Shown piece after piece: positions 7,901 to 54,200 of a stretch of 64,000 nucleotides of DNA (position 1 is the first letter of the stretch; each line of letters begins with the position of its first letter). The notes beneath the pieces are model-generated. The model saw only the letters and a program-made list of their open reading frames with translations, made no database searches and was not told where the DNA came from. Source of the stretch: Auanema rhodensis. Lineage: Eukaryota; Animalia; Nematoda. A program made the position numbers and the translations under genes. The stretch is from assembly GCA_964057225.1 (NCBI GenBank), contig OZ059895.1:23976025-24040024 (forward strand), in the 5' to 3' direction.

Positions 7901-10900
7901 GACTTTGAATTTTACGTGAACTTTAATTTATGCTAATTAAATGTACACGTGATGTGCACTTGGTATGTAACTCGCTTCACGTGAAAGATAAAGAGATGCG
8001 GTTTTCAAAATCAGATTCCCCATGTCCATATTAGTCTAAAAACAAATTTTTATTGATATTGGTGCATGGTAACCATGACTTTGAATTTTACGTGAACTTT
8101 AATTTATGCTAATTAAATGTACACGTGATGTGCACTTGGTATGTAACTCGCTTCACGTGAAAGATAAAGAGATGCGGTTTTCAAAATCAGATTCCCCATG
8201 TCCATATTAGTCTAAAAACAAATTTTTATTGATATTGGTTCATGGTAACCATGACTTTGAAATTTACGTGAACTTTAATTTATGCTAATTAAATGTACAC
8301 GTGATGTGCACTTGGTATGTAACTCGCTTCACGTAAAAGATAAAGAGATGCGGTTTTCAAAATTAGATTCCCCATGTCCATATTAGTCTAAAAACAAATT
8401 TTTATTGATATTGGTGCATGGTAACCATGACTTTGAATTTTACTTGAACTTTAATTTATGCTAATTAAATGTACACGTGATGTGCACTTGGTATGTAACT
8501 CGCTTCACGTAAAAGATAAAGAGATGCGGTTTTCAAAATTAGATTCCCCATGTCCATATTAGTCTAAAAACAAATTTTTATTGATATTGGTGCATGGTAA
8601 CCATGACTTTGAAATTTACGTGAACTTTAATTTATGCTAATTAAATGTACACGTGATGTGCACTTGGTATGTAACTCGCTTCACGTAAAAGATAAAGAGA
8701 TGCGGTTTTCAAAATTAGATTCCCCATGTCCATATTAGTCTAAAAACAAATTTTTATTGATATTGGTGCATGGTAACCATGACTTTGAATTTTACGTGAA
8801 CTTTAATTTATGCTAATTAAATGTACACGTGATGTGCACTTGGTATGTAACTCGCTTCACGTAAAAGATAAAGAGATGCGGTTTTCAAAATTAGATTCCC
8901 CATGTCCATATTAGTCTTACGTGAACTTTAATTTATGCTAATTAAATGTACACGTGATGTGCACTTGGTATGTAACTCGCTTCACGTGAAAGATAAAGAG
9001 ATGCGGTTTTCAAAATTAGATTCCCCATGTCCATATTAGTCTAAAAACAAATTTTTATTGATATTGGTGCATGGTAACCATGACTTTGAATTTTACGTGA
9101 ACTTTAATTTATGCTAATTAAATGTACACGTGATGTGCACTTGGTATGTAACTCGCTTCACGTGAAAGATAAAGAGATGCGGTTTTCAAAATTAGATTCC
9201 CCATGTCCATATTAGTCTAAAAACAAATTTTTATTGATATTGCTTCATGGTAACCATGACTTTGAAATTTACGTGAACTTTAATTTATGCTAATTAAATG
9301 TACACGTGATGTGCACTTGGTATGTAACTCGCTTCACGTGAAAGATAAAGAGATGCGGTTTTCAAAATTAGATTCCCCATGTCCATATTAGTCTAAAAAC
9401 AAATTTTTATTGATATTGGTTCATGGTAACCATGACTTTGAAATTTACGTGAACTTTAATTTATGCTAATTAAATGTACACGTGATGTGCACTTGGTATG
9501 TAACTCGCTTCACGTAAAAGATAAAGAGATGCGGTTTTCAAAATTAGATTCCCCATGTCCATATTAGTCTAAAAACAAATTTTTATTGATATTGGTGCAT
9601 GGTAACCATGACTTTGAATTTTACGTGAACTTTAATTTATGCTAATTAAATGTACACGTGATGTGCACTTGGTATGTAACTCGCTTCACGTGAAAGATAA
9701 AGAGATGCGGTTTTCAAAATCAGATTCCCCATGTCCATATTAGTCTAAAAACAAATTTTTATTGATATTGGTTCATGGTAACCATGACTTTGAAATTTAC
9801 GTGAACTTTAATTTATGCTAATTAAATGTACACGTGATGTGCACTTGGTATGTAACTCGCTTCACGTAAAAGATAAAGAGATGCGGTTTTCAAAATTAGA
9901 TTCCCCATGTCCATATTAGTCTAAAAACAAATTTTTATTGATATTGGTGCATGGTAACCATGACTTTGAAATTTACGTGAACTTTAATTTATGCTAATTA
10001 AATGTACACGTGATGTGCACTTGGTATGTAACTCGCTTCACGTGAAAGATAAAGAGATGCGGTTTTCAAAATTAGATTCCCCATGTCCATATTAGTCTAA
10101 AAACAAACTTTTATTGATATTGGTTCATGGTAACCATGACTTTGAAATTTACGTGAACTTTAATTTATGCTAATTAAATGTACACGTGATGTGCACTTGG
10201 TATGTAACTCGCTTCACGTGAAAGATAAAGAGATGCGGTTTTCAAAATTAGATTCCCCATGTCCATATTAGTCTAAAAACAAATTTTTATTGATATTGGT
10301 TCATGGTAACCATGACTTTGAAATTTACGTGAACTTTAATTTATGCTAATTAAATGTAAACGTGATGTGCACTTGGTATGTAACTCGCTTCACGTAAAAG
10401 ATAAAGAGATGCGGTTTTCAAAATTAGATTCCCCATGTCCATATTAGTCTAAAAACAAATTTTTATTGATATTGGTGCATGGTAACCATGACTTTGAATT
10501 TTACGTGAACTTTAATTTATGCTAATTAAATGTACACGTGATGTGCACTTGGTATGTAACTCGCTTCACGTGAAAGATAAAGAGATGCGGTTTTCAAAAT
10601 CAGATTCCCCATGTCCATATTAGTCTAAAAACAAATTTTTATTGATATTGGTGCATGGTAACCATGACTTTGAATTTTACGTGAACTTTAATTTATGCTA
10701 ATTAAATGTACACGTGATGTGCACTTGGTATGTAACTCGCTTCACGTGAAAGATAAAGAGATGCGGTTTTCAAAATCAGATTCCCCATGTCCATATTAGT
10801 CTAAAAACAAATTTTTATTGATATTGGTTCATGGTAACCATGACTTTGAAATTTACGTGAACTTTAATTTATGCTAATTAAATGTACACGTGATGTGCAC

Positions 10901-13900
10901 TTGGTATGTAACTCGCTTCACGTAAAAGATAAAGAGATGCGGTTTTCAAAATTAGATTCCCCATGTCCATATTAGTCTAAAAACAAATTTTTATTGATAT
11001 TGGTGCATGGTAACCATGACTTTGAATTTTACTTGAACTTTAATTTATGCTAATTAAATGTACACGTGATGTGCACTTGGTATGTAACTCGCTTCACGTA
11101 AAAGATAAAGAGATGCGGTTTTCAAAATTAGATTCCCCATGTCCATATTAGTCTAAAAACAAATTTTTATTGATATTGGTGCATGGTAACCATGACTTTG
11201 AAATTTACGTGAACTTTAATTTATGCTAATTAAATGTACACGTGATGTGCACTTGGTATGTAACTCGCTTCACGTAAAAGATAAAGAGATGCGGTTTTCA
11301 AAATTAGATTCCCCATGTCCATATTAGTCTAAAAACAAATTTTTATTGATATTGGTGCATGGTAACCATGACTTTGAATTTTACGTGAACTTTAATTTAT
11401 GCTAATTAAATGTACACGTGATGTGCACTTGGTATGTAACTCGCTTCACGTAAAAGATAAAGAGATGCGGTTTTCAAAATTAGATTCCCCATGTCCATAT
11501 TAGTCTTACGTGAACTTTAATTTATGCTAATTAAATGTACACGTGATGTGCACTTGGTATGTAACTCGCTTCACGTGAAAGATAAAGAGATGCGGTTTTC
11601 AAAATTAGATTCCCCATGTCCATATTAGTCTAAAAACAAATTTTTATTGATATTGGTGCATGGTAACCATGACTTTGAATTTTACGTGAACTTTAATTTA
11701 TGCTAATTAAATGTACACGTGATGTGCACTTGGTATGTAACTCGCTTCACGTGAAAGATAAAGAGATGCGGTTTTCAAAATTAGATTCCCCATGTCCATA
11801 TTAGTCTAAAAACAAATTTTTATTGATATTGCTTCATGGTAACCATGACTTTGAAATTTACGTGAACTTTAATTTATGCTAATTAAATGTACACGTGATG
11901 TGCACTTGGTATGTAACTCGCTTCACGTGAAAGATAAAGAGATGCGGTTTTCAAAATTAGATTCCCCATGTCCATATTAGTCTAAAAACAAATTTTTATT
12001 GATATTGCTTCATGGTAACCATGACTTTGAAATTTACGTGAACTTTAATTTATGCTAATTAAATGTACACGTGATGTGCACTTGGTATGTAACTCGCTTC
12101 ACGTGAAAGATAAAGAGATGCGGTTTTCAAAATTAGATTCCCCATGTCCATATTAGTCTAAAAACAAATTTTTATTGATATTGCTTCATGGTAACCATGA
12201 CTTTGAAATTTACGTGAACTTTAATTTATGCTAATTAAATGTACACGTGATGTGCACTTGGTATGTAACTCGCTTCACGTGAAAGATAAAGAAATGCGGT
12301 TTTCAAAATTAGATTCCCCATGTCCATATTAGTCTAAAAACAAATTTTTATTGATATTGGTGCATGGTAACCATGACTTTGAATTTTACGTGAACTTTAA
12401 TTTATGCTAATTAAATGTACACGTGATGTGCACTTGGTATGTAACTCGCTTCACGTAAAAGATAAAGAGATGCGGTTTTCAAAATTAGATTCCCCATGTC
12501 CATATTAGTCTAAAAACAAATTTTTATTGATATTGGTGCATGGTAACCATGACTTTGAATTTTACGTGAACTTTAATTTATGCTAATTAAATGTACACGT
12601 GATGTGCACTTGGTATGTAACTCGCTTCACGTGAAAGATAAAGAGATGCGGTTTTCAAAATCAGATTCCCCATGTCCATATTAGTCTAAAAACAAATTTT
12701 TATTGATATTGGTGCATGGTAACCATGACTTTGAATTTTACGTGAACTTTAATTTATGCTAATTAAATGTACACGTGATGTGCACTTGGTATGTAACTCG
12801 CTTCACGTGAAAGATAAAGAGATGCGGTTTTCAAAATCAGATTCCCCATGTCCATATTAGTCTAAAAACAAATTTTTATTGATATTGGTTCATGGTAACC
12901 ATGACTTTGAAATTTACGTGAACTTTAATTTATGCTAATTAAATGTACACGTGATGTGCACTTGGTATGTAACTCGCTTCACGTAAAAGATAAAGAGATG
13001 CGGTTTTCAAAATTAGATTCCCCATGTCCATATTAGTCTAAAAACAAATTTTTATTGATATTGGTGCATGGTAACCATGACTTTGAATTTTACTTGAACT
13101 TTAATTTATGCTAATTAAATGTACACGTGATGTGCACTTGGTATGTAACTCGCTTCACGTAAAAGATAAAGAGATGCGGTTTTCAAAATTAGATTCCCCA
13201 TGTCCATATTAGTCTAAAAACAAATTTTTATTGATATTGGTGCATGGTAACCATGACTTTGAAATTTACGTGAACTTTAATTTATGCTAATTAAATGTAC
13301 ACGTGATGTGCACTTGGTATGTAACTCGCTTCACGTAAAAGATAAAGAGATGCGGTTTTCAAAATTAGATTCCCCATGTCCATATTAGTCTAAAAACAAA
13401 TTTTTATTGATATTGGTGCATGGTAACCATGACTTTGAATTTTACGTGAACTTTAATTTATGCTAATTAAATGTACACGTGATGTGCACTTGGTATGTAA
13501 CTCGCTTCACGTAAAAGATAAAGAGATGCGGTTTTCAAAATTAGATTCCCCATGTCCATATTAGTCTTACGTGAACTTTAATTTATGCTAATTAAATGTA
13601 CACGTGATGTGCACTTGGAATGTAACTCGCTTCACGTAAAAGATAAAGAGATGCGGTTTTCAAAATTAGATTCCCCATGTCCATATTAGTCTAAAAACAA
13701 ATTTTTATTGATATTGGTGCATGGTAACCATGACTTTGAATTTTACGTGAACTTTAATTTATGCTAATTAAATGTACACGTGATGTGCACTTGGTATGTA
13801 ACTCGCTTCACGTGAAAGATAAAGAGATGCGGTTTTCAAAATTAGATTCCCCATGTCCATATTAGTCTAAAAACAAATTTTTATTGATATTGCTTCATGG

Positions 13901-16722
13901 TAACCATGACTTTGAAATTTACGTGAACTTTAATTTATGCTAATTAAATGTACACGTGATGTGCACTTGGTATGTAACTCGCTTCACGTGAAAGATAAAG
14001 AGATGCGGTTTTCAAAATTAGATTCCCCATGTCCATATTAGTCTAAAAACAAATTTTTATTGATATTGGTGCATGGTAACCATGACTTTGAATTTTACGT
14101 GAACTTTAATTTATGCTAATTAAATGTACACGTGATGTGCACTTGGTATGTAACTCGCTTCACGTGAAAGATAAAGAGATGCGGTTTTCAAAATTAGATT
14201 CCCCATGTCCATATTAGTCTAAAAACAAATTTTTATTGATATTGCTTCATGGTAACCATGACTTTGAAATTTACGTGAACTTTAATTTATGCTAATTAAA
14301 TGTACACGTGATGTGCACTTGGTATGTAACTCGCTTCACGTGAAAGATAAAGAAATGCGGTTTTCAAAATTAGATTCCCCATGTCCATATTAGTCTAAAA
14401 ACAAATTTTTATTGATATTGGTTCATGGTAACCATGACTTTGAAATTTACGTGAACTTTAATTTATGCTAATTAAATGTACACGTGATGTGCACTTGGTA
14501 TGTAACTCGCTTCACGTAAAAGATAAAGAGATGCGGTTTTCAAAATTAGATTCCCCATGTCCATATTAGTCTAAAAACAAATTTTTATTGATATTGGTGC
14601 ATGGTAACCATGACTTTGAATTTTACGTGAACTTTAATTTATGCTAATTAAATGTACACGTGATGTGCACTTGGTATGTAACTCGCTTCACGTGAAAGAT
14701 AAAGAGATGCGGTTTTCAAAATTAGATTCCCCATGTCCATATTAGTCTAAAAACAAATTTTTATTGATATTGGTGCATGGTAACTATGACTTTGAAATTT
14801 ACGTGAACTTTAATTTATGCTAATTAAATGTACACGTGATGTGCACTTGGTATGTAACTTGCTTCACGTGAAAGATAAAGAGATGCGGTTTTCAAAATTA
14901 GATTCCCCATGTCCATATTAGTCTAAAAACAAATTTTTATTGATATTGGTTCATGGTAACCATGACTTTGAAATTTACGTGAACTTTAATTTATGCTAAT
15001 TAAATGTACACGTGATGTGCACTTGGTACGTAACTCGCTTCACGTGAAAGATGAAGAGATGCGGTTTTCAAAATTAGATTCCCCATGTCCATATTAGTCT
15101 AAAAACAAATTTTTATTGATATTGGTGCATGGTAACCATGACTTTGAAATTTACGTGAACTTTAATTTATGCTAATTAAATGTACACGTGATGTGCACTT
15201 GGTATGTAACTCGCTTCACGTGAAAGATAAAGAGATGCGGTTTTCAAAATTAGATTCCCCATGTCCATATTAGTCTAAAAACAAACTTTTATTGATATTG
15301 GTTCATGGTAACCATGACTTTGAAATTTACGTGAACTTTAATTTATGCTAATTAAATGTACACGTGATGTGCACTTGGTATGTAACTCGCTTCACGTGAA
15401 AGATGAAGAGATGCGGTTTTCACAATTAGATTCCCCATGTCCATATTAGTCTAAAAACAAATTTTTATTGATATTGGTTCATGGTAACCATGACTTTGAA
15501 ATTTACGTGAACTTTAATTTATGCTAATTAAATGTACACGTGATGTGCACTTGGTATGTAACTCGCTTCACGTAAAAGATAAAGAGATGCGGTTTTCAAA
15601 ATCAGATTCCCCATGTCCATATTAGTCTAAAAACAAATTTTTATTGATATTGGTGCATGGTAACCATGACTTTGAATTTTACGTGAACTTTAATTTATGC
15701 TAATTAAATGTACACGTGATGTGCACTTGGTATGTAACTCGCTTCACGTGAAAGATGAAGAGATGCGGTTTTCACAATTAGATTCCCCATGTCCATATTA
15801 GTCTAAAAACAAATTTTTATTGATATTGGTTCATGGTAACCATGACTTTGAAATTTACGTGAACTTTAATTTATGCTAATTAAATGTACACGTGATGTGC
15901 ACTTGGTATGTAACTCGCTTCACGTGAAAGATGAAGAGATGCGGTTTTCACAATTAGATTCCCCATGTCCATATTAGTCTAAAAACAAATTTTTATTGAT
16001 ATTGGTGCATGGTAACCATGACTTTGAATTTTACGTGAACTTTAATTTATGCTAATTAAATGTACACGTGATGTGCACTTGGTATGTAACTCGCTTCACG
16101 TAAAAGATAAAGAGATGCGGTTTTCAAAATTAGATTCCCCATGTCCATATTAGTCTTACGTGAACTTTAATTTATGCTAATTAAATGTACACGTGATGTG
16201 CACTTGGTATGTAACTCGCTTCACGTGAAAGATAAAGAGATGCGGTTTTCAAAATTAGATTCCCCATGTCCATATTAGTCTAAAAACAAATTTTTATTGA
16301 TATTGGTGCATGGTAACCATGACTTTGAATTTTACGTGAACTTTAATTTATGCTAATTAAATGTACACGTGATGTGCACTTGGTATGTAACTCGCTTCAC
16401 GTGAAAGATAAAGAGATGCGGTTTTCAAAATTAGATTCCCCATGTCCATATTAGTCTAAAAACAAATTTTTATTGATATTGCTTCATGGTAACCATGACT
16501 TTGAAATTTACGTGAACTTTAATTTATGCTAATTAAATGTACACGTGATGTGCACTTGGTATGTAACTCGCTTCACGTGAAAGATAAAGAGATGCGGTTT
16601 TCAAAATTAGATTCCCCATGTCCATATTAGTCTAAAAACAAATTTTTATTGATATTGGTGCATGGTAACCATGACTTTGAATTTTACGTGAACTTTAATT
16701 TATGCTAATTAAATGTACACGT
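1..16722. repeat. 176-bp satellite tandem array, segment 1 (continues beyond window start)
   Basis: CTTTAATTTATGC recurs at 1, 177, 353 and onward (period 176). Copies differ only at a few recurring SNP sites, and four 125-bp deletion monomers are present. The array breaks at monomer position 30 (...GTACACGT|TTGAACGG). Confidence 0.99.
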
Positions 16723-16728
16723 TTGAAC

Positions 16729-16815
16729 GGGTTTATTGTTCGAATCACAGGTTAAGAGCGGAAATAGTGTTAATAAATAGAGAAAATTAAAGATATACAG
16801 AAGAACCTTACAATA
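16729..16815 (-). other. Conserved 3'-terminal motif pair of element A, including an AATAAA signal
   Basis: The minus strand reads TATTGTAAGG..CTTCT ... TAACCTGTGAT..GAACAATAAACC, matching element B at 51201-51279. Confidence 0.7.
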
Positions 16816-16947
16816 CAAACATACATAATAATAATTGGCTTGATATATGTAAAGAAACGAGTCGTGTATATTTCCTTTTATTATGATAGCGTACAGCACT
16901 ACTGGTGTGTTAAAGTTTCGAAGTTCTAGTTAGGTAGAGGAGAGAAA

Positions 16948-17094
16948 ATTTGTTCAGTGTAGATCACTGACCTCTGTATTATTCTGACAGGTGCGGTGGA
17001 ACCCTTGACATGAGTCGAGCCCGTTCTGACAGTAAGAGGTAACTAACGCTTGATCCATATGACTAATGTCTATAGGATTCGGAGCGTAGTAACA
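16948..17094 (-). ncRNA. Putative cis-acting structured RNA (four-way junction) in the element A 3' UTR
   Basis: Homologous to 50896-51049. Helices: UGUU/AACA, ACU/AGU + ACGCU/AGCGU, GAC-AUUA-GUC, ACCUC/GAGGU, CUGUCAG/CUGUCAG (one U-U), CGG/CCG, GACUC/GGGUU, CAGUG/CACUG. Compensatory changes are seen relative to element B. Confidence 0.75.
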
Positions 17095-17212
17095 GGTCTC
17101 GGAGGTTAACTAGGAAACTGTCTAACTATAACATACAGTGAGGCTAGGAGGCTAGTAATAGGGAAAAAAAAATATACATGAGAGGATTTCAAGTTACATT
17201 AATCAGAGCAGG

Positions 17213-18844
17213 TTAAAAATCATTTAAAATAACAGATAGGTGTTTTCTGAAGCTGGAGGTTTTTCTCAGTTGAATGATGTTTTCAGGAAGAGCGTTCCAG
17301 ATTTGAATAGCTCTGTATTCAATTCCAGTTCTTGTTTCGCTTCTCCAAAGATCAGGATATTCAACATTCCATAGGTGCCTACGAAGTGAATGTGCGTAGT
17401 GCTTGATAGTAAAAAAATTAAGGCTGTTTTCTGGAATGTTTTTAGTTATCTGATTGTGATAGAAGACGAGATCAATTAATAGTCTTCTAAAAGAAAGTTC
17501 CTTAGCTCCAAGAAACAATAGCTGGTTTTTGTAATCCAAAGCTATTTCGGCTCTCTTGAAAATAGCGTTTAAGAACTTTTTTTGCACGGACTCAATGCGT
17601 GCTTTATCCTTGTTATTTTGAGGAGACCATACAACTGAGGCATATTCTAAAATAGGCCTGATATAGCAGCAAAACAGTTTAAACATCAAGGTTGGTGATC
17701 TAGAGTAAAAACAACGCAAGATAACACGACATTTGTGAGCAGCGATGTTAGAGATTCTATTTATATGGCTATTGAAAGAAAGATTATAGTCAGTACATAC
17801 ACCAAGATCTTTGTATGTTGTTACTGTGGCTAACGAGATGTTGCCAAATTTGAAAATTGTGTTTAATCTTGATGTAGTAGTGCTAGATATAATCATAACT
17901 TTAGATTTAGTAGTATTTACCTTCATACCGTTTAATAGACACCAGTTTTTCAGATTATCCAAGGCCAATTGTAAACTTACAGGATTAGTGCTGCTTAGTT
18001 TGAGATCATCCGCATAGAGAGTTGGATGCACGTCATCTGGTAAGTTTGATGTGATGTCATTTATGTAAAATAAGAAAAGAAGTGGACCCAGAACTGTCCC
18101 TTGTGGAACTCCACAGGGCAAACGATTTTTAGCGGATAGAGAATAATTAACCAATACCGAGAAGGATCTATCAGTAATGAAATTTTTGAGAAAGGAGTGA
18201 ATACAGCCGTCGATACCAATTGATTTTAGTTTAGTTAAAAGAACAGAATGATTTATAAGATCGAAAGCCTTGGAGAAGTCAATGAAGGCAACATAAACAG
18301 GTCTTTTCTTGTCCACTGAAGATCTCCAGAGTACATGACTACTAAGAATTGCCGATACAGTATTGCGTTTTGGAAGAAAAGCAAACTGATTAGGTGAAAT
18401 ACAGCCAGAGGAAATACCAAAATCAAGAAGAGGTGAACGGAGATGACGTTCAAAAACTTTAGACAGACTGGATGTGAGAGAAATAGGACGATAATTAACC
18501 GGGTTTGAAGAAAGCCCTGATTTGAGAACAGGACGAATCCATGCTGTTTTCCAGTCAGCAGGGCAAGAGGAGGAAATAAGAAGATTGTGAAAGACAAAGG
18601 CTAGAGGCTGAGAAATAGTAGAAGCACAATTTTTTAGGAAAAAATAAGGGATTCCGTCAGGAGAGGTTGATACCCGGAGAGGTAACTGACAGAGAATTTT
18701 GTAGACGTTGAGAGGGGACACATCAATAAAATCGATGATACCAGAAGAAGGGAAAAGAGGAGCATGTGCTGAAGAGATAGGAAGAGGGTGAACAGAGAAG
18801 GTACTGGCAAAGATAGAAGCTTTGTCAGAATCAGACGAGACCAT
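17213..18844 (-). CDS. LINE ORF2 fragment: complete reverse transcriptase domain plus C-terminal region, lacking the endonuclease (543 aa, uninterrupted)
   Basis: Non-LTR RT motifs in order: YRPISLTS, QFAF, FIDFSKAFD, GVPQGTVLGPLLF, YADD, YKDLGV, then RPILEYASVVWSP and IESVQ, typical of the CR1-like group. The ATG at 18842-18844 lies at the satellite junction and is probably not the native start. Confidence 0.93.
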   Translation of the reverse strand: MVSSDSDKASIFASTFSVHPLPISSAHAPLFPSSGIIDFIDVSPLNVYKILCQLPLRVSTSPDGIPYFFLKNCASTISQPLAFVFHNLLISSSCPADWKTAWIRPVLKSGLSSNPVNYRPISLTSSLSKVFERHLRSPLLDFGISSGCISPNQFAFLPKRNTVSAILSSHVLWRSSVDKKRPVYVAFIDFSKAFDLINHSVLLTKLKSIGIDGCIHSFLKNFITDRSFSVLVNYSLSAKNRLPCGVPQGTVLGPLLFLFYINDITSNLPDDVHPTLYADDLKLSSTNPVSLQLALDNLKNWCLLNGMKVNTTKSKVMIISSTTTSRLNTIFKFGNISLATVTTYKDLGVCTDYNLSFNSHINRISNIAAHKCRVILRCFYSRSPTLMFKLFCCYIRPILEYASVVWSPQNNKDKARIESVQKKFLNAIFKRAEIALDYKNQLLFLGAKELSFRRLLIDLVFYHNQITKNIPENSLNFFTIKHYAHSLRRHLWNVEYPDLWRSETRTGIEYRAIQIWNALPENIIQLRKTSSFRKHLSVILNDF

Positions 18845-21800
18845 GACTTTGAAATTTACGTGAACTTTAATTTATGCTAATTAAATGTACACGTGATGTG
18901 CACTTGGTATGTAACTTGCTTCACGTGAAAGATAAAGAGATGCGGTTTTCAAAATTAGATTCCCCATGTCCATATTAGTCTAAAAACAAATTTTTATTGA
19001 TATTGGTTCATGGTAACCATGACTTTGAAATTTACGTGAACTTTAATTTATGCTAATTAAATGTACACGTGATGTGCACTTGGTACGTAACTCGCTTCAC
19101 GTGAAAGATGAAGAGATGCGGTTTTCAAAATTAGATTCCCCATGTCCATATTAGTCTAAAAACAAATTTTTATTGATATTGGTGCATGGTAACCATGACT
19201 TTGAAATTTACGTGAACTTTAATTTATGCTAATTAAATGTACACGTGATGTGCACTTGGTATGTAACTCGCTTCACGTGAAAGATAAAGAGATGCGGTTT
19301 TCAAAATTAGATTCCCCATGTCCATATTAGTCTAAAAACAAACTTTTATTGATATTGGTTCATGGTAACCATGACTTTGAAATTTACGTGAACTTTAATT
19401 TATGCTAATTAAATGTACACGTGATGTGCACTTGGTATGTAACTCGCTTCACGTGAAAGATAAAGAGATGCGGTTTTCAAAATCAGATTCCCCATGTCCA
19501 TATTAGTCTAAAAACAAATTTTTATTGATATTGGTGCATGGTAACCATGACTTTGAATTTTACGTGAACTTTAATTTATGCTAATTAAATGTACACGTGA
19601 TGTGCACTTGGTATGTAACTCGCTTCACGTGAAAGATGAAGAGATGCGGTTTTCACAATTAGATTCCCCATGTCCATATTAGTCTAAAAACAAATTTTTA
19701 TTGATATTGGTTCATGGTAACCATGACTTTGAAATTTACGTGAACTTTAATTTATGCTAATTAAATGTACACGTGATGTGCACTTGGTATGTAACTCGCT
19801 TCACGTGAAAGATGAAGAGATGCGGTTTTCACAATTAGATTCCCCATGTCCATATTAGTCTAAAAACAAATTTTTATTGATATTGGTGCATGGTAACCAT
19901 GACTTTGAATTTTACGTGAACTTTAATTTATGCTAATTAAATGTACACGTGATGTGCACTTGGTATGTAACTCGCTTCACGTAAAAGATAAAGAGATGCG
20001 GTTTTCAAAATTAGATTCCCCATGTCCATATTAGTCTTACGTGAACTTTAATTTATGCTAATTAAATGTACACGTGATGTGCACTTGGTATGTAACTCGC
20101 TTCACGTGAAAGATAAAGAGATGCGGTTTTCAAAATTAGATTCCCCATGTCCATATTAGTCTAAAAACAAATTTTTATTGATATTGGTGCATGGTAACCA
20201 TGACTTTGAATTTTACGTGAACTTTAATTTATGCTAATTAAATGTACACGTGATGTGCACTTGGTATGTAACTCGCTTCACGTGAAAGATAAAGAGATGC
20301 GGTTTTCAAAATTAGATTCCCCATGTCCATATTAGTCTAAAAACAAATTTTTATTGATATTGCTTCATGGTAACCATGACTTTGAAATTTACGTGAACTT
20401 TAATTTATGCTAATTAAATGTACACGTGATGTGCACTTGGTATGTAACTCGCTTCACGTGAAAGATAAAGAGATGCGGTTTTCAAAATTAGATTCCCCAT
20501 GTCCATATTAGTCTAAAAACAAATTTTTATTGATATTGGTGCATGGTAACCATGACTTTGAATTTTACGTGAACTTTAATTTATGCTAATTAAATGTACA
20601 CGTGATGTGCACTTGGTATGTAACTCGCTTCACGTGAAAGATAAAGAGATGCGGTTTTCAAAATTAGATTCCCCATGTCCATATTAGTCTAAAAACAAAT
20701 TTTTATTGATATTGCTTCATGGTAACCATGACTTTGAAATTTACGTGAACTTTAATTTATGCTAATTAAATGTACACGTGATGTGCACTTGGTATGTAAC
20801 TCGCTTCACGTGAAAGATAAAGAAATGCGGTTTTCAAAATTAGATTCCCCATGTCCATATTAGTCTAAAAACAAATTTTTATTGATATTGGTTCATGGTA
20901 ACCATGACTTTGAAATTTACGTGAACTTTAATTTATGCTAATTAAATGTACACGTGATGTGCACTTGGTATGTAACTCGCTTCACGTAAAAGATAAAGAG
21001 ATGCGGTTTTCAAAATTAGATTCCCCATGTCCATATTAGTCTAAAAACAAATTTTTATTGATATTGGTGCATGGTAACCATGACTTTGAATTTTACGTGA
21101 ACTTTAATTTATGCTAATTAAATGTACACGTGATGTGCACTTGGTATGTAACTCGCTTCACGTGAAAGATAAAGAGATGCGGTTTTCAAAATTAGATTCC
21201 CCATGTCCATATTAGTCTAAAAACAAATTTTTATTGATATTGGTGCATGGTAACTATGACTTTGAAATTTACGTGAACTTTAATTTATGCTAATTAAATG
21301 TACACGTGATGTGCACTTGGTATGTAACTTGCTTCACGTGAAAGATAAAGAGATGCGGTTTTCAAAATTAGATTCCCCATGTCCATATTAGTCTAAAAAC
21401 AAATTTTTATTGATATTGGTTCATGGTAACCATGACTTTGAAATTTACGTGAACTTTAATTTATGCTAATTAAATGTACACGTGATGTGCACTTGGTACG
21501 TAACTCGCTTCACGTGAAAGATGAAGAGATGCGGTTTTCAAAATTAGATTCCCCATGTCCATATTAGTCTAAAAACAAATTTTTATTGATATTGGTGCAT
21601 GGTAACCATGACTTTGAAATTTACGTGAACTTTAATTTATGCTAATTAAATGTACACGTGATGTGCACTTGGTATGTAACTCGCTTCACGTGAAAGATAA
21701 AGAGATGCGGTTTTCAAAATTAGATTCCCCATGTCCATATTAGTCTAAAAACAAACTTTTATTGATATTGGTTCATGGTAACCATGACTTTGAAATTTAC

Positions 21801-48800: not shown

Positions 48801-49715
48801 GTAACCATGACTTTGAAATTTACGTGAACTTTAATTTATGCTAATTAAATGTACACGTGATGTGCACTTGGTATGTAACTCGCTTCACGTGAAAGATAAA
48901 GAGATGCGGTTTTCAAAATTAGATTCCCCATGTCCATATTAGTCTAAAAACAAATTTTTATTGATATTGGTGCATGATAACCATGACTTTGAATTTTACG
49001 TGAACTTTAATTTATGCTAATTAAATGTACACGTGATGTGCACTTGGTATGTAACTCGCTTCACGTGAAAGATAAAGAGATGCGGTTTTCACAATTAGAT
49101 TCCCCATGTCCATATTAGTCTAAAAACAAATTTTTATTGATATTGGTGCATGGTAACCATGACTTTGAAATTTACGTGAACTTTAATTTATGCTAATTAA
49201 ATGTACACGTGATGTGCACTTGGTATGTAACTCGCTTCACGTGAAAGATAAAGAGATGCGGTTTTCAAAATTAGATTCCCCATGTCCATATTAGTCTAAA
49301 AACAAATTTTTATTGATATTGGTGCATGGTAACCATGACTTTGAAATTTACGTGAACTTTAATTTATGCAAATTAAATGTACACGTGATGTGCACTTGGT
49401 ATGTAACTCGCTTCACGTGAAAGATAAAGAGATGCGGTTTTCAAAATTAGATTCCCCATGTCCATATTAGTCTAAAAACAAATTTTTATTGATATTGGTG
49501 CATGATAACCATGACTTTGAATTTTACGTGAACTTTAATTTATGCTAATTAAATGTACACGTGATGTGCACTTGGTATGTAACTCGCTTCACGTGAAAGA
49601 TAAAGAGATGCGGTTTTCAAAATTAGATTCCCCATGTCCATATTAGTCTAAAAACAAATTTTTATTGATATTGGTGCATGGTAACCATGACTTTGAAATT
49701 TACGTGAACTTTAAT
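18840..49715. repeat. 176-bp satellite tandem array, segment 2
   Basis: Resumes at monomer position ~152 (ACCATGACTTTG) and runs to position 7 (CTTTAAT) at 49715, with the same orientation and consensus as segment 1. Confidence 0.99.
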
Positions 49716-49886
49716 GGTCCTCTGTTGTTTTTATGGTCCTCTGTTGTTTTTATGGTCCTCTGTTGTTTTTATGGTCCTCTGTTGTTTTTATGGTCCTCTG
49801 TTGTTTTTATGGTCCTCTGTTGTTTTTATGGTCCTCTGTTGTTTTTATGGTCCTCTGTTGTTTTTAGGGTCCTCTGTTGTTTTTAT
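49716..49886 (+). repeat. Nine tandem copies of the 19-mer GGTCCTCTGTTGTTTTTAT at the element's 5' end
   Basis: Copies start at 49716, 49735, 49754, 49773, 49792, 49811, 49830, 49849 (ends TAG instead of TAT) and 49868. The last copy is in frame with the RT and encodes GPLLFL. Confidence 0.97.
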
Positions 49887-50743
49887 TTTACATAAATGAC
49901 ATAACATCCGATTTTCCTAATGATGTCAGCTCCATTCTCTATGCAGATGATTTGAAGCTCTACAGCAAAAACCCTACTAGTTTACAGCGGGCTCTTGATC
50001 AATTAAAATTATGGTGCGACTCAAACGGGATGGCCGTTAACATCTCTAAATCTAAAATAATGGTTATGTCAAATAAACCAATTAGTAATCCTGAAAACTT
50101 CGCTTTCACTTTTGGTAACTTTAACCTATCTTCAGTAGATTGTTACAAAGATCTTGGAGTATTCACAGATTACAATCTCTCCTTCTCAAACCACATAAAC
50201 AAAATCACAAGTGAAGCAGCAAAAAAATGTAAAATAATTTTACGTTGTTTCTACTCTAAATCGCCTTCTCTTATGTACAACTTATTCTGTACTTACATAA
50301 GACCAATATTGGAATATGCTTCTATTATCTGGTCCCCACAAGATTCTAAAGACAAAGACCGAATTGAAAATGTTCAAAAAAAGTTTCTGCGCGCAGTTTT
50401 CATGCGCTCAGGATCTAAAATGAGCTATGAAGATCAACTGTCTTTGTTAGGGGGGCAAAAGTTATTTTTCAGAAGACTAGTTTTCGATTTAATTTTTTAT
50501 TTTAACCAAATAAAACAACCAATTTCAGAGAATACTTTGAAAATTTTTAAGCTCAAAAAATTCACACACTCACTAAGGCGTCACGAATGGACTGTGGATT
50601 TTCCAAACGTCCAGAAGACTCAAACTAGAAGAGGTATCGAGTACAGAGCCATAGAACTCTGGAATTCAATACCATCAAACATTGTGAGTCTTGAAAAAGC
50701 TCCCAAATTTCGCAAACATCTTCAACTTTTCCTTAGCGATTAG
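49868..50743 (+). pseudogene. Truncated LINE ORF2: RT from motif GPLLF through YADD to the stop codon, uninterrupted
   Basis: GPLLFLFYINDI...LYADDLK...YKDLGV...RPILEYASIIWSP...FRKHL is collinear with the C-terminal ~290 aa of the element A ORF. The N-terminal RT motifs and a native ATG are missing. Confidence 0.92.
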
Positions 50744-50895
50744 CTTGCACTTTCATTATTAATGTTTTTCGTCTGCTTATGATATTTTGTTCTCTAATTA
50801 TTATTTCAATATGTCTTCTACAAATATCTATGCAAACTATGTTCTTCATGTATCATTTTTTGTTTTCAACCACATCCTTGTTCCCTTTGCTACAA

Positions 50896-51049
50896 TGTTA
50901 CTTCACCATGGACTCTATAGGCATTAGCCATACGAATCTGGTGATAGTTACCTCTGATTACCAGAACGGGCTCGACTTTTTCTCTAAGTTCCACCGCACC
51001 TGGTAAAAGTAAAAATGAGGTCAGGTCATATTTTTTGAACTGAACAAAT
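50896..51049 (+). ncRNA. Putative cis-acting structured RNA (four-way junction) in the element B 3' UTR
   Basis: Helices UGUU/AACA, ACU/AGU + UCACC/GGUGA, GGC-AUUA-GCC, ACCUC/GAGGU, UUACCAG/CUGGUAA, CGG/CCG, GACUU/AAGUU and CAG.UCA/UGA.CUG give the same topology as in element A. Confidence 0.75.
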
Positions 51050-51200
51050 CCCTTGTTTATCAAGGATGGGTTGACAACTATGACACATAGATTTACTTGT
51101 TTAGAATATATATTTTCTACTGACATAATTGATTCAATAATTATTCTTATCTCTATACAATTAATGTTTTCATGTCAATCAATTTATATAATCATGTTCA

Positions 51201-51279
51201 TATTGTAAGGAACTTCTTTTATCCACTTTCTTTTTTCAAAACTGCTATTGTTATAACCTGTGATAAAGAACAATAAACC
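51201..51279 (+). other. Conserved 3'-terminal motif pair of element B, including an AATAAA signal
   Basis: TATTGTAAGG..CTTCT ... TAACCTGTGAT..GAACAATAAACC is shared with element A. No poly(A) follows. Confidence 0.7.
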
Positions 51280-51284
51280 TTGAC

Positions 51285-54200
51285 TAATTTATGCTAATTA
51301 AATGTACACGTGATGTGCACTTGGTATGTAACTCGCTTCACGTGAAAGATAAAGAGATGCGGTTTTCAAAATTAGATTCCCCATGTCCATATTAGTCTAA
51401 AAACAAATTTTTATTGATATTGGTGCATGATAACCATGACTTTGAATTTTACGTGAACTTTAATTTATGCTAATTAAATGTACACGTGATGTGCACTTGG
51501 TATGTAACTCGCTTCACGTGAAAGATAAAGAGATGCGGTTTTCAAAATTAGATTCCCCATGTCCATATTAGTCTAAAAACAAATTTTTATTGATATTGGT
51601 GCATGGTAACCATGACTTTGAAATTTACGTGAACTTTAATTTATGCTAATTAAATGTACACGTGATGTGCACTTGGTATGTAACTCGCTTCACGTGAAAG
51701 ATAAAGAGATGCGGTTTTCAAAATTAGATTCCCCATGTCCATATTAGTCTAAAAACAAATTTTTATTGATATTGGTGCATGGTAACCATGACTTTGAAAT
51801 TTACGTGAACTTTAATTTATGCTAATTAAATGTACACGTGATGTGCACTTGGTATGTAACTCGCTTCACGTGAAAGATAAAGATATGCGGTTTTCAAAAT
51901 TATATTCCCCATGTCCATATTAGTCTAAAAACAAATTTTTATTGATATTGGTTCATGGTAACCATGACTTTGAATTTTACGTGAACTTTAATTTATGCTA
52001 ATTAAATGTACACGTGATGTGCACTTGGTATGTAACTCGCTTCACGTGAAAGATAAAGAGATGCGGTTTTCAAAATTAGATTCCCCATGTCCATATTAGT
52101 CTAAAAACAAATTTTTATTGATATTGGTGCATGGTAACCATGACTTTGAATTTTACGTGAACTTTAATTTATGCTAATTAAATGTACACGTGATGTGCAC
52201 TTGGTATGTAACTCGCTTCACGTGAAAGATAAAGAGATGCGGTTTTCAAAATTAGATTCCCCATGTCCATATTAGTCTAAAAACAAATTTTTATTGATAT
52301 TGGTGCATGGTAACCATGACTTTGAAATTTACGTGAACTTTAATTTATGCTAATTAAATGTACACGTGATGTGCACTTGGTATGTAACTCGCTTCACGTG
52401 AAAGATAAAGAGATGCGGTTTTCAAAATTAGATTCCCCATGTCCATATTAGTCTAAAAACAAATTTTTATTGATATTGGTTCATGGTAACCATGACTTTG
52501 AAATTTACGTGAACTTTAATTTATGCTAATTAAATGTACACGTGATGTGCACTTGGTATGTAACTCGCTTCACGTGAAAGATAAAGAGATGCGGTTTTCA
52601 AAATTAGATTCCCCATGTCCATATTGGTCTAAAAACAAATTTTTATTGATATTGGTGCATGGTAACCATGACTTTGAAATTTACGTGAACTTTAATTTAT
52701 GCTAATTAAATGTACACGTGATGTGCACTTGGTATGTAACTCGCTTCACGTGAAAGATAAAGAGATGCGGTTTTCAAAATTAGATTACCCATGTCCATAT
52801 TAGTCTAAAAACAAATTTTTATTGATATTGGTGCATGGTAACCATGACTTTGAAATTTACGTGAACTTTAATTTATGCAAATTAAATGTACACGTGATGT
52901 GCACTTGGTATGTAACTCGCTTCACGTGAAAGATAAAGAGATGCGGTTTTCAAAATTAGATTCCCCATGTCCATATTAGTCTAAAAACAAATTTTTATTG
53001 ATATTGGTGCATGGTAACCATGACTTTGAATTTTACGTGAACTTTAATTTATGCTAATTAAATGTACACGTGATGTGCACTTGGTATGTAACTCGCTTCA
53101 CGTGAAAGATAAAGAGATGCGGTTTTCAAAATTAGATTCCCCATGTCCATATTAGTCTAAAAACAAATTTTTATTGATATTGGTGCATGGTAACCATGAC
53201 TTTGAAATTTACGTGAACTTTAATTTATGCTAATTAAATGTACACGTGATGTGCACTTGGTATGTAACTCGCTTCACGTGAAAGATAAAGAGATGCGGTT
53301 TTCAAAATTAGATTCCCCATGTCCATATTAGTCTAAAAACAAATTTTTATTGATATTGGTGCATGGTAACCATGACTTTGAAATTTACGTGAACTTTAAT
53401 TTATGCTACTTAAATGTACACGTGATGTGCACTTGGTATGTAACTCGCTTCACGTGAAAGATAAAGAGATGCGGTTTTCAAAATTATATTCCCCATGTCC
53501 ATATTAGTCTAAAAACAAATTTTTATTGATATTGGTTCATGGTAACCATGACTTTGAAATTTACGTGAACTTTAATTTATGCTAATTAAATGTACACGTG
53601 ATGTGCACTTGGTATGTAACTCGCTTCACGTGAAAGATAAAGAGATGCGGTTTTCAAAATTAGATTCCCCATGTCCATATTAGTCTAAAAACAAATTTTT
53701 ATTGATATTGGTGCATGGTAACCATGACTTTGAAATTTACGTGAACTTTAATTTATGCAAATTAAATGTACACGTGATGTGCACTTGGTATGTAACTCGC
53801 TTCACGTGAAAGATAAAGAGATGCGGTTTTCAAAATTAGATTCCCCATGTCCATATTAGTCTAAAAACAAATTTTTATTGATATTGGTGCATGGTAACCA
53901 TGACTTTGAATTTTACGTGAACTTTAATTTATGCTAATTAAATGTACACGTGATGTGCACTTGGTATGTAACTCGCTTCACGTGAAAGATAAAGAGATGC
54001 GGTTTTCAAAATTAGATTCCCCATGTCCATATTAGTCTAAAAACAAATTTTTATTGATATTGGTGCATGATAACCATGACTTTGAATTTTACGTGAACTT
54101 TAATTTATGCTAATTAAATGTACACGTGATGTGCACTTGGTATGTAACTCGCTTCACGTGAAAGATAAAGAGATGCGGTTTTCAAAATTAGATTCTCCAT

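Follow-up and report, generated by a model that had tools for sequence, protein, structure and literature searches.

The window, as we call the whole 64,000-nt stretch of DNA that was analysed, contains at 49716-49886 nine head-to-tail copies of the 19-nt unit GGTCCTCTGTTGTTTTTAT, counted by direct reading of the letters, at the 5' end of a truncated LINE copy, element B. We lean towards the view that this array was seeded at integration, by repeated end-to-end template jumps of the reverse transcriptase (RT) on a terminal RNA piece of about 19 nt. The array stands at the truncation point of the element and 5' reiteration with a period near 19 is found across the family, hence we place the seeding in the time when the 5' junction was made. 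The array, its coincidence with the truncation point, the recurrence of such repeats at other ends of the family and the variability at the unit boundaries are all direct observations.

The window makes up the final 64 kb of a 24.04-Mb contig (the assembly has 181 Mb in 112 contigs) and consists throughout of a 176-bp satellite (98% homogeneous, 32% G+C), with two interruptions, elements A and B. A shortened satellite monomer of 125 bp was seen at 8792-9042, 11381-11631, 13442-13692, 16031-16281 and 19912-20162, and onward to about 31700; its spacing of ~2.1-2.6 kb indicates a higher-order periodicity in the first half of the window array, and between 31.7 and 64 kb of the window no such monomer was found. 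Element A sits at another satellite position (after ...GTACACG) than B; beyond it the satellite continues out of phase, and this implies a loss of array sequence there.

About 16724-18839, minus strand: element A, from a related LINE family and truncated at its 5' end.

Including its array, element B extends from 49716 to 51284 on the plus strand, and a 4-bp satellite duplication (TAAT) surrounds the insertion. Its features are the following.

49712-49715, plus strand: left target-site duplication TAAT, with which the satellite flank ends; its final 1-2 bases can also be read as the end of a unit.
49716-49867, plus strand: eight extra 19-nt copies of the element 5' end, copies 1-7 ending in T and copy 8 in G.
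49867-49867, plus strand: single variant base G (for T), at the junction adjoining the native copy.
49868-49886, plus strand: native 19-mer, the first 19 nt of the truncated element, in RT coding sequence (GPLLFL).
49868-50743, plus strand: ORF2 remnant, the C-terminal part of the RT including YADD and a downstream region, open to the stop codon.
50744-51284, plus strand: 3' untranslated region, ending ...AACAATAAACCTTGAC without poly(A), the last 30 nt being common to 29 family copies.
51285-51288, plus strand: right target-site duplication TAAT, from which the satellite resumes in phase as TAATTTATGC.

Tandem Repeats Finder reported the array as 49710-49886, with period 19, 9.3 copies, 98% matches, no indels and a score of 340. 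Units 1-7 and 9 show no differences among them and all end in T; unit 8 is the sole variant, with G (49867) as its last base. Unit 9 (49868-49886) forms the first 19 nt of the 1,417-nt 5'-truncated LINE copy (49868-51284) and passes directly into RT coding sequence (GPLLFLFYINDI...YADD), in a frame that stays open until the stop at 50741-50743; the 3' untranslated region measures 541 nt. On the left the satellite flank has ...CTTTAAT (49715) as its last bases, and the AT or T at the outer junction can be assigned either to the satellite or to the end of a unit (microhomology). The start of the array and the truncation point lie 0-2 nt apart, each junction in B has a microhomology of at most 1 nt, and the copies were drawn from one flank only. 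The sequence-only reading had already described eight extra 19-nt copies before the native one, a unit that is the exact first 19 nt of the truncated element and codes for RT (GPLLFL), seven copies equal to the native one, a G at the end of the copy next to it and an AT shared with the satellite at the outer junction; direct reading, Tandem Repeats Finder and the frame as read to its stop bear out this description in full.

Nine perfect 19-mers by chance are ruled out, and the exact number nine is the number as assembled. The string across a unit-to-unit junction gave eight matches in the 181-Mb assembly, all at the B locus, and a control pattern gave none; by this search the assembly contains no second copy, source copy or allele of the B array. 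RNA structure at the truncated end of B was considered as a cause and rejected, as the fold was no better than that of shuffled sequence (z 0.49). The body of B has one private substitution in 1,417 nt (position 50362), and judged by this B is an extremely young insertion.

The longer members of the family illustrate the native state of the unit. Seven such copies (L002-L008), whose identity to B across the 1,417 native bases is 98-99.7%, contain the 19-mer once, each time preceded by ...GGTACAGTTCTT; this was one of the checks that had been proposed, and its outcome supports an array made at the truncated RNA end. The base natively upstream of the 19-mer in B's subfamily is T (...TTCTT before GGTCC). 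We had considered that the G at 49867 could be a carried-over native upstream base, an idea that originated from GGGTCC at the homologous place in element A, and rejected it because of this T. Instead we take the G to have been left by the first jump, as a base that was mispaired or non-templated, and the same proposal in the sequence-only reading is thereby strengthened. From the private rate of B about 0.1 later mutations are expected in the 152 extra bases and about 0.006 at a linker position. Slippage that starts from core-G-core can only yield G linkers, so the seven T linkers outside the innermost G need at least two additions not due to slippage, or a rare point mutation.

The family census comprised all copies sharing the terminal 30 nt of element B's family, of which the assembly contains exactly 29. 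Judged by their junctions and flanks they represent 21 insertion events, 8 full-length and 13 truncated, and two subfamilies can be told apart, a young one and a second with 79% identity to it; several insertions were later multiplied along with the surrounding satellite. In the 954-aa ORF2 of the full-length copy L036, Pfam detected Exo_endo_phos and Exo_endo_phos_2 at residues 47-238 and RVT_1 at residues 526-731 (E 5e-34). No RNase H domain was found by Pfam at E<=5 in the 235 residues after the RT and in the upstream ORFs. The copies have the hallmarks of LINEs, namely a common 3' end, 5' ends at many positions, short target-site duplications and no LTRs, and B's family is an APE-type non-LTR retrotransposon with the endonuclease followed by the RT in one ORF. 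An Atlas protein search returned only generic endonuclease-plus-RT clusters. The missing poly(A) and the short duplicable 3' end (TGAC) seem compatible with the CR1 clade, which they fit and do not define. Two copies, L020 and L021, have the terminal TGAC twice at the 3' junction (CCTTGAC TGAC TAATTT), a small 3'-end reiteration like that of LINEs with short 3' repeats.

The family is site-specific for the 176-bp satellite. Seventeen of the 21 events are inserted at the identical satellite nucleotide and in the same orientation, with the 3' junction ...CCTTGAC/TAATTTATGC, and the site can be written ...GTGAACTTTAA(TTT) / element / TAATTTATGC; these 17 events span different truncation points and both of the subfamilies. 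The target-site duplication, TAAT in B, reaches up to TAATTT in other family insertions, and the four off-site insertions have TAA or TTA directly after the element. The loci compared were L001-L030 and L045-L047; in the window the site corresponds to 49715/49716 and 51284/51285.

A survey of the 5' junctions of all 29 family copies, as the sequence-only reading had proposed, revealed reiteration in three of the 13 truncated events (B, L022 and L025) and in all eight full-length ones. In B the sequence repeated (9 x 19 nt) is RT coding sequence, while in L022 it is 3' UTR: in this copy a C separates two runs of its own first 19 nt, and A8 lies outside them. L025 shows a threefold and complex reiteration of 23-28 nt that includes 5 nt of target and a TTG microhomology. 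Fillers of 3-20 nt were found in three truncated events (GGG, a 13-nt filler and an A-rich 20-mer), and clean 5' junctions in seven of 13. As ten of the 13 truncated events have no reiteration, the process is facultative. In all family sequence fetched, arrays with a Tandem Repeats Finder score of >=80 and a period of 17-28 occur at 5' ends only. The commonest unit length is 19 nt in three unrelated sequences, those of B, the full-length array and L022; the repeat boundary equals the truncation point in B and L022 and nt 1 in the full-length element, and the bases at the junctions vary (G versus T in B, C in L022).

Fillers rich in A, on the sense strand and between target and 5' end, are seen in L022 (A8), L009-L011 (the A-rich 20-mer) and L052 (A10); a template jump followed by brief copying of an RNA poly(A) tail may have produced them. 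Over ten positions the B unit (window 49718-49727) and nt 3-12 of the full-length unit match at eight bases in register, TC.TC.GTTG, with a rough p of about 0.01. A sequence signal common to the reiterated ends was considered on this ground and treated as coincidence, as the units of L022 and L025 lack TC.TC.GTTG.

Element A's family is about 67% related to that of B and uses a different satellite site in the opposite orientation. The unit in its full-length copies is a different one, of 16-18 nt, and is present there 0, about 1 and about 9 times. One of its truncated copies, L051, opens with a snap-back, in which its own first ~21 nt recur in inverted orientation across a loop of 6-7 nt.

G000:C4:23316250-23316700, about 310-375 in sense orientation, minus strand: snap-back of L051.

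In B's own family every full-length event (8/8) opens with a tandem array of its own first 18-19 nt, in about 1.5 to 32 copies. The arrays are as follows.

L035 4941-5469 and L036 4941-5564, minus strand: full-length 5' arrays; others lie in L037-L041, L044 and L048.
C101 and C95, two copies of one event: 32 and 27 units or anchors.
C81, full-length event: 28 units or anchors.
C4, full-length event: 19 units or anchors.
C86, full-length event: 11 units or anchors.
C3, full-length event outside the satellite: 9 perfect units.
C5, full-length event: 2 units or anchors.
Two full-length copies of the 79% subfamily, separate events: 6 and 6 units or anchors.

Of 121 interior units in these arrays 51 are 19 nt long. 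The variation is concentrated at one boundary, from unit nt 18 (...GACCTCC) to nt 1 (ACTCG...), where the 121 units show 7-8 linker forms (C, TC, CC, AC, CTC, CAC, CTG and others); the 18-nt core has about 7 variant types, spread across positions. Linker variety focused on the boundary fits what is expected from non-templated addition at each jump, and part of it sits in a C-rich run that could slip alone. Variants come in blocks, and outer blocks derive from inner ones (an 18-nt deletion variant in L037, a 20-nt variant in L041). In the 79% subfamily the two copies have the inner three units in common and differ in the outer units. Block derivation, together with these common inner and different outer units, suggests that the arrays grow at the outer tip.

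These patterns can be drawn together in a scheme for element B, in which the enzyme, the RNA fragment and the order of events are what we infer. First-strand cDNA synthesis would arrive at the broken 5' end of the RNA, at GGUCC, and the RT would not switch immediately to the upstream target DNA. At the first jump a non-matching C would be placed in the cDNA opposite the terminal U, giving the G at 49867, whereupon the RT would restart at the 3' end of the last ~19 nt of its template and the cycle would repeat, with a matching A placed opposite the terminal U at later jumps. The length of ~19 nt may correspond to the RNA left under the enzyme after host RNase H has degraded the rest of the hybrid. 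Such a short RNA piece could dissociate, and it and the cut top strand of the target would then compete to accept the next jump; each time the RNA piece wins one unit would be added, and when the target wins the reaction would be over. In B the cycle would thus stop once a T or AT lets the cDNA end pair with the satellite's cut top strand. As Pfam found no RNase H domain in the element itself, the ~19-nt ruler would depend on a host activity or on the footprint of the enzyme. In the same scheme the A-runs outside the units would stem from poly(A) tails of RNA onto which the RT had jumped, and the 21-nt snap-back of L051 would be a single-stranded cDNA tail that copied itself as far as the gap permitted.

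It should be noted that the number of units is not fixed at insertion. The full-length copies L035 (G000:C95) and L036 (G000:C101) are one insertion present twice, perhaps as haplotigs or through a recent segmental duplication; their junction filler is the same and their flanks are identical over 1.8 kb. They have 5 differences in 4,940 nt (about 0.1%), yet 27 and 32 units as well as internal block rearrangements, so array copy number changes after insertion, and the change is fast enough to have altered even the young B. Ordinary slippage acts on these elements too, as the older full-length copy L007 (G000:C86) contains two internal tandem duplications that are private to it, one of 6 nt and one of 22 nt (2 x 11). 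These lie at the equivalents of window 49879 and 50537, the 6-nt one in the same T-run as the B unit. A further private internal tandem duplication, of 14 nt, was found in L037.

Rather unlikely, and still the strongest of the alternatives, is that integration gave only one or two extra copies, by any kind of template switch, and that slippage or unequal sister-chromatid exchange later raised them to nine. The rapid divergence of the arrays on C95 and C101 and the private duplications in the older copies L007 and L037 favour such growth, and the strict periodicity of the B array is no argument against it, since expansion retains the period of the first duplication. On the other hand B with its single private substitution is extremely young, and its seven T linkers outside one G would require a three-copy start or a rare mutation at that very base. 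Moreover, the copies of two truncated insertions that were duplicated (L009-L011 and L028-L030) have kept identical junctions, and L038 retains nine perfect units though the rest of the copy is only 98% identical to the family. The sequence-only reading had the array made at the truncated RNA end in one event; the family census and the single 19-mer elsewhere support the place. The enzyme is a putative one, and the template may have been an RNA fragment, a circle or DNA. That all nine copies of B arose in one event is plausible.

We consider it unlikely that the host made the array, by end joining of the polymerase-theta type, in which the cDNA end would be joined to the upstream target through cycles of annealing, extension and dissociation that copy the nearest flank. 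Theta-mediated end joining has a prominent role in the germ line of nematodes, and its hallmark is the insertion of templated pieces from the flanks. The mixture of element-end copies with target bases and TTG microhomology in L025, along with the snap-back junction of L051 in element A's family, is what such joining could leave; for L025 a repair polymerase fits as well as a reverse transcriptase. In B, however, eight exact 19-nt copies need a stop at the same base every time, though many other T positions in the unit could re-prime, and the microhomology at each junction is only 1 nt. The A-rich fillers of L022 and L009-L011 resemble copies of an RNA 3' tail and hence point to a reverse transcriptase. 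As far as reported, theta insertions are short, and the irregular templated pieces from either flank that characterise them are seen in L025 and not in B.

A purely post-insertional minisatellite, in which a chance slippage duplication abutting the 5' junction was followed by growth, is highly improbable: the unit does end in a T-rich run, and L007 has its 6-nt slippage duplication at the same run, but the repeat begins at the 5' terminus in the three truncated and eight full-length events, and no comparable array lies within any family copy. Least credible of all is that the copy number or the whole array was made by the assembler, for although the window lies at a contig end in near-identical satellite that is difficult to assemble, the 171-bp array is far below long-read length and adjoined by 1.4 kb of unique LINE sequence, and similar arrays of different sequences occur on many contigs.

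If template jumping at integration is the origin of the B array, it is possible, and we put it forward only tentatively, that satellite-targeting LINEs have a built-in, telomerase-like addition of ~19-nt repeats, available whenever the RT comes to an RNA 5' end, which rebuilds the 5' leader (probably the promoter) at each insertion and on broken RNAs turns coding sequence into one-event minisatellites. Of the steps of target-primed reverse transcription, the one by which a LINE completes its 5' end is understood least. Non-templated addition and jumping are known from purified enzymes, and we found no description of natural junctions that record many consecutive jumps, with a junction base of its own for every jump. 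If the ~19-nt period is the RNA held after degradation of the hybrid, such junctions would read out the footprint of the enzyme in living cells and would show, in addition, how RNA and target DNA compete to accept a jump. The process would further explain how LINEs renew a 5' leader that is otherwise eroded by truncation, and a minisatellite would be born in one step from coding sequence. The youth of the family and its intact ORF2 make the idea accessible to experiment.

No published account of LINE 5' ends with such reiteration turned up in our literature searches, a result that by itself does not prove their absence, and several known systems come near. Full-length elements of mouse L1, with its monomers, and of trypanosome SLACS, with its 185-bp repeats, start with a variable number of tandem units, as do those of B's family; these units are about 200 bp and part of the promoter region, and we know of no report that they form on truncated ends from arbitrary coding sequence. 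In LINEs of the CR1, L2 and I type, slippage of the RT at the template end gives short 3'-terminal tandem repeats with units of 3-8 nt. Those repeats arise at initiation on the RNA 3' end, whereas the repeats of B's family belong to completion, at the 5' end, and have units of ~19 nt. Polymerase theta inserts short copies of the flanks at repaired breaks, sometimes in several rounds, with irregular length and often mixed orientation; the L025 and L051 junctions resemble such insertions, and a series of eight exact copies is to our knowledge not among them.

The closest biochemical relatives are the RTs of R2 (Bombyx) and of human L1 (ORF2p), which add non-templated bases at the 5' end of a template and jump to the 3' end of a new one (PMC8857657; PMC10830420). 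These jumps need little or no pairing and produce concatemers in vitro, L1 ORF2p included, and RNase H2 is recruited to L1 ORF2p via PCNA (PMC8857657; PMC10830420). The variable junction bases obtained in vitro are like the linkers of B's family. In vitro, whole templates are joined, usually once or a few times; in B's family the same terminal segment of ~19 nt seems to be reused in vivo, up to eight times in B and 30 or more times in full-length copies, with an apparent length ruler. Tandem cDNA repeats are also made by the bacterial defence RT DRT2, which jumps repeatedly on one non-coding RNA (PMC12039810; PMC11100668). DRT2 differs from B's family in that its template ends are set by a structured RNA, its unit is longer, its product is a gene, its host is bacterial and integration has no part in it. 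The likeness is one of outcome, and with no dedicated template RNA the process in B's family stands outside the DRT2 system.

Telomerase, finally, likewise recopies a short template onto one 3' end by means of an RT and thereby generates a tandem array, and the term telomerase-like synthesis, which the sequence-only reading had applied to B, suits the outcome. It does not extend to membership of that class, as the units are arbitrary, the protein is a LINE ORF2, and neither a dedicated RNA nor TERT is involved. Telomerase works with TERT and with a dedicated RNA that has defined template boundaries, whereas in B's family the units differ between events and consist of arbitrary element sequence with no fixed template, so that the sequence at any RNA 5' end would serve as template for an ORF2 protein with an APE endonuclease.
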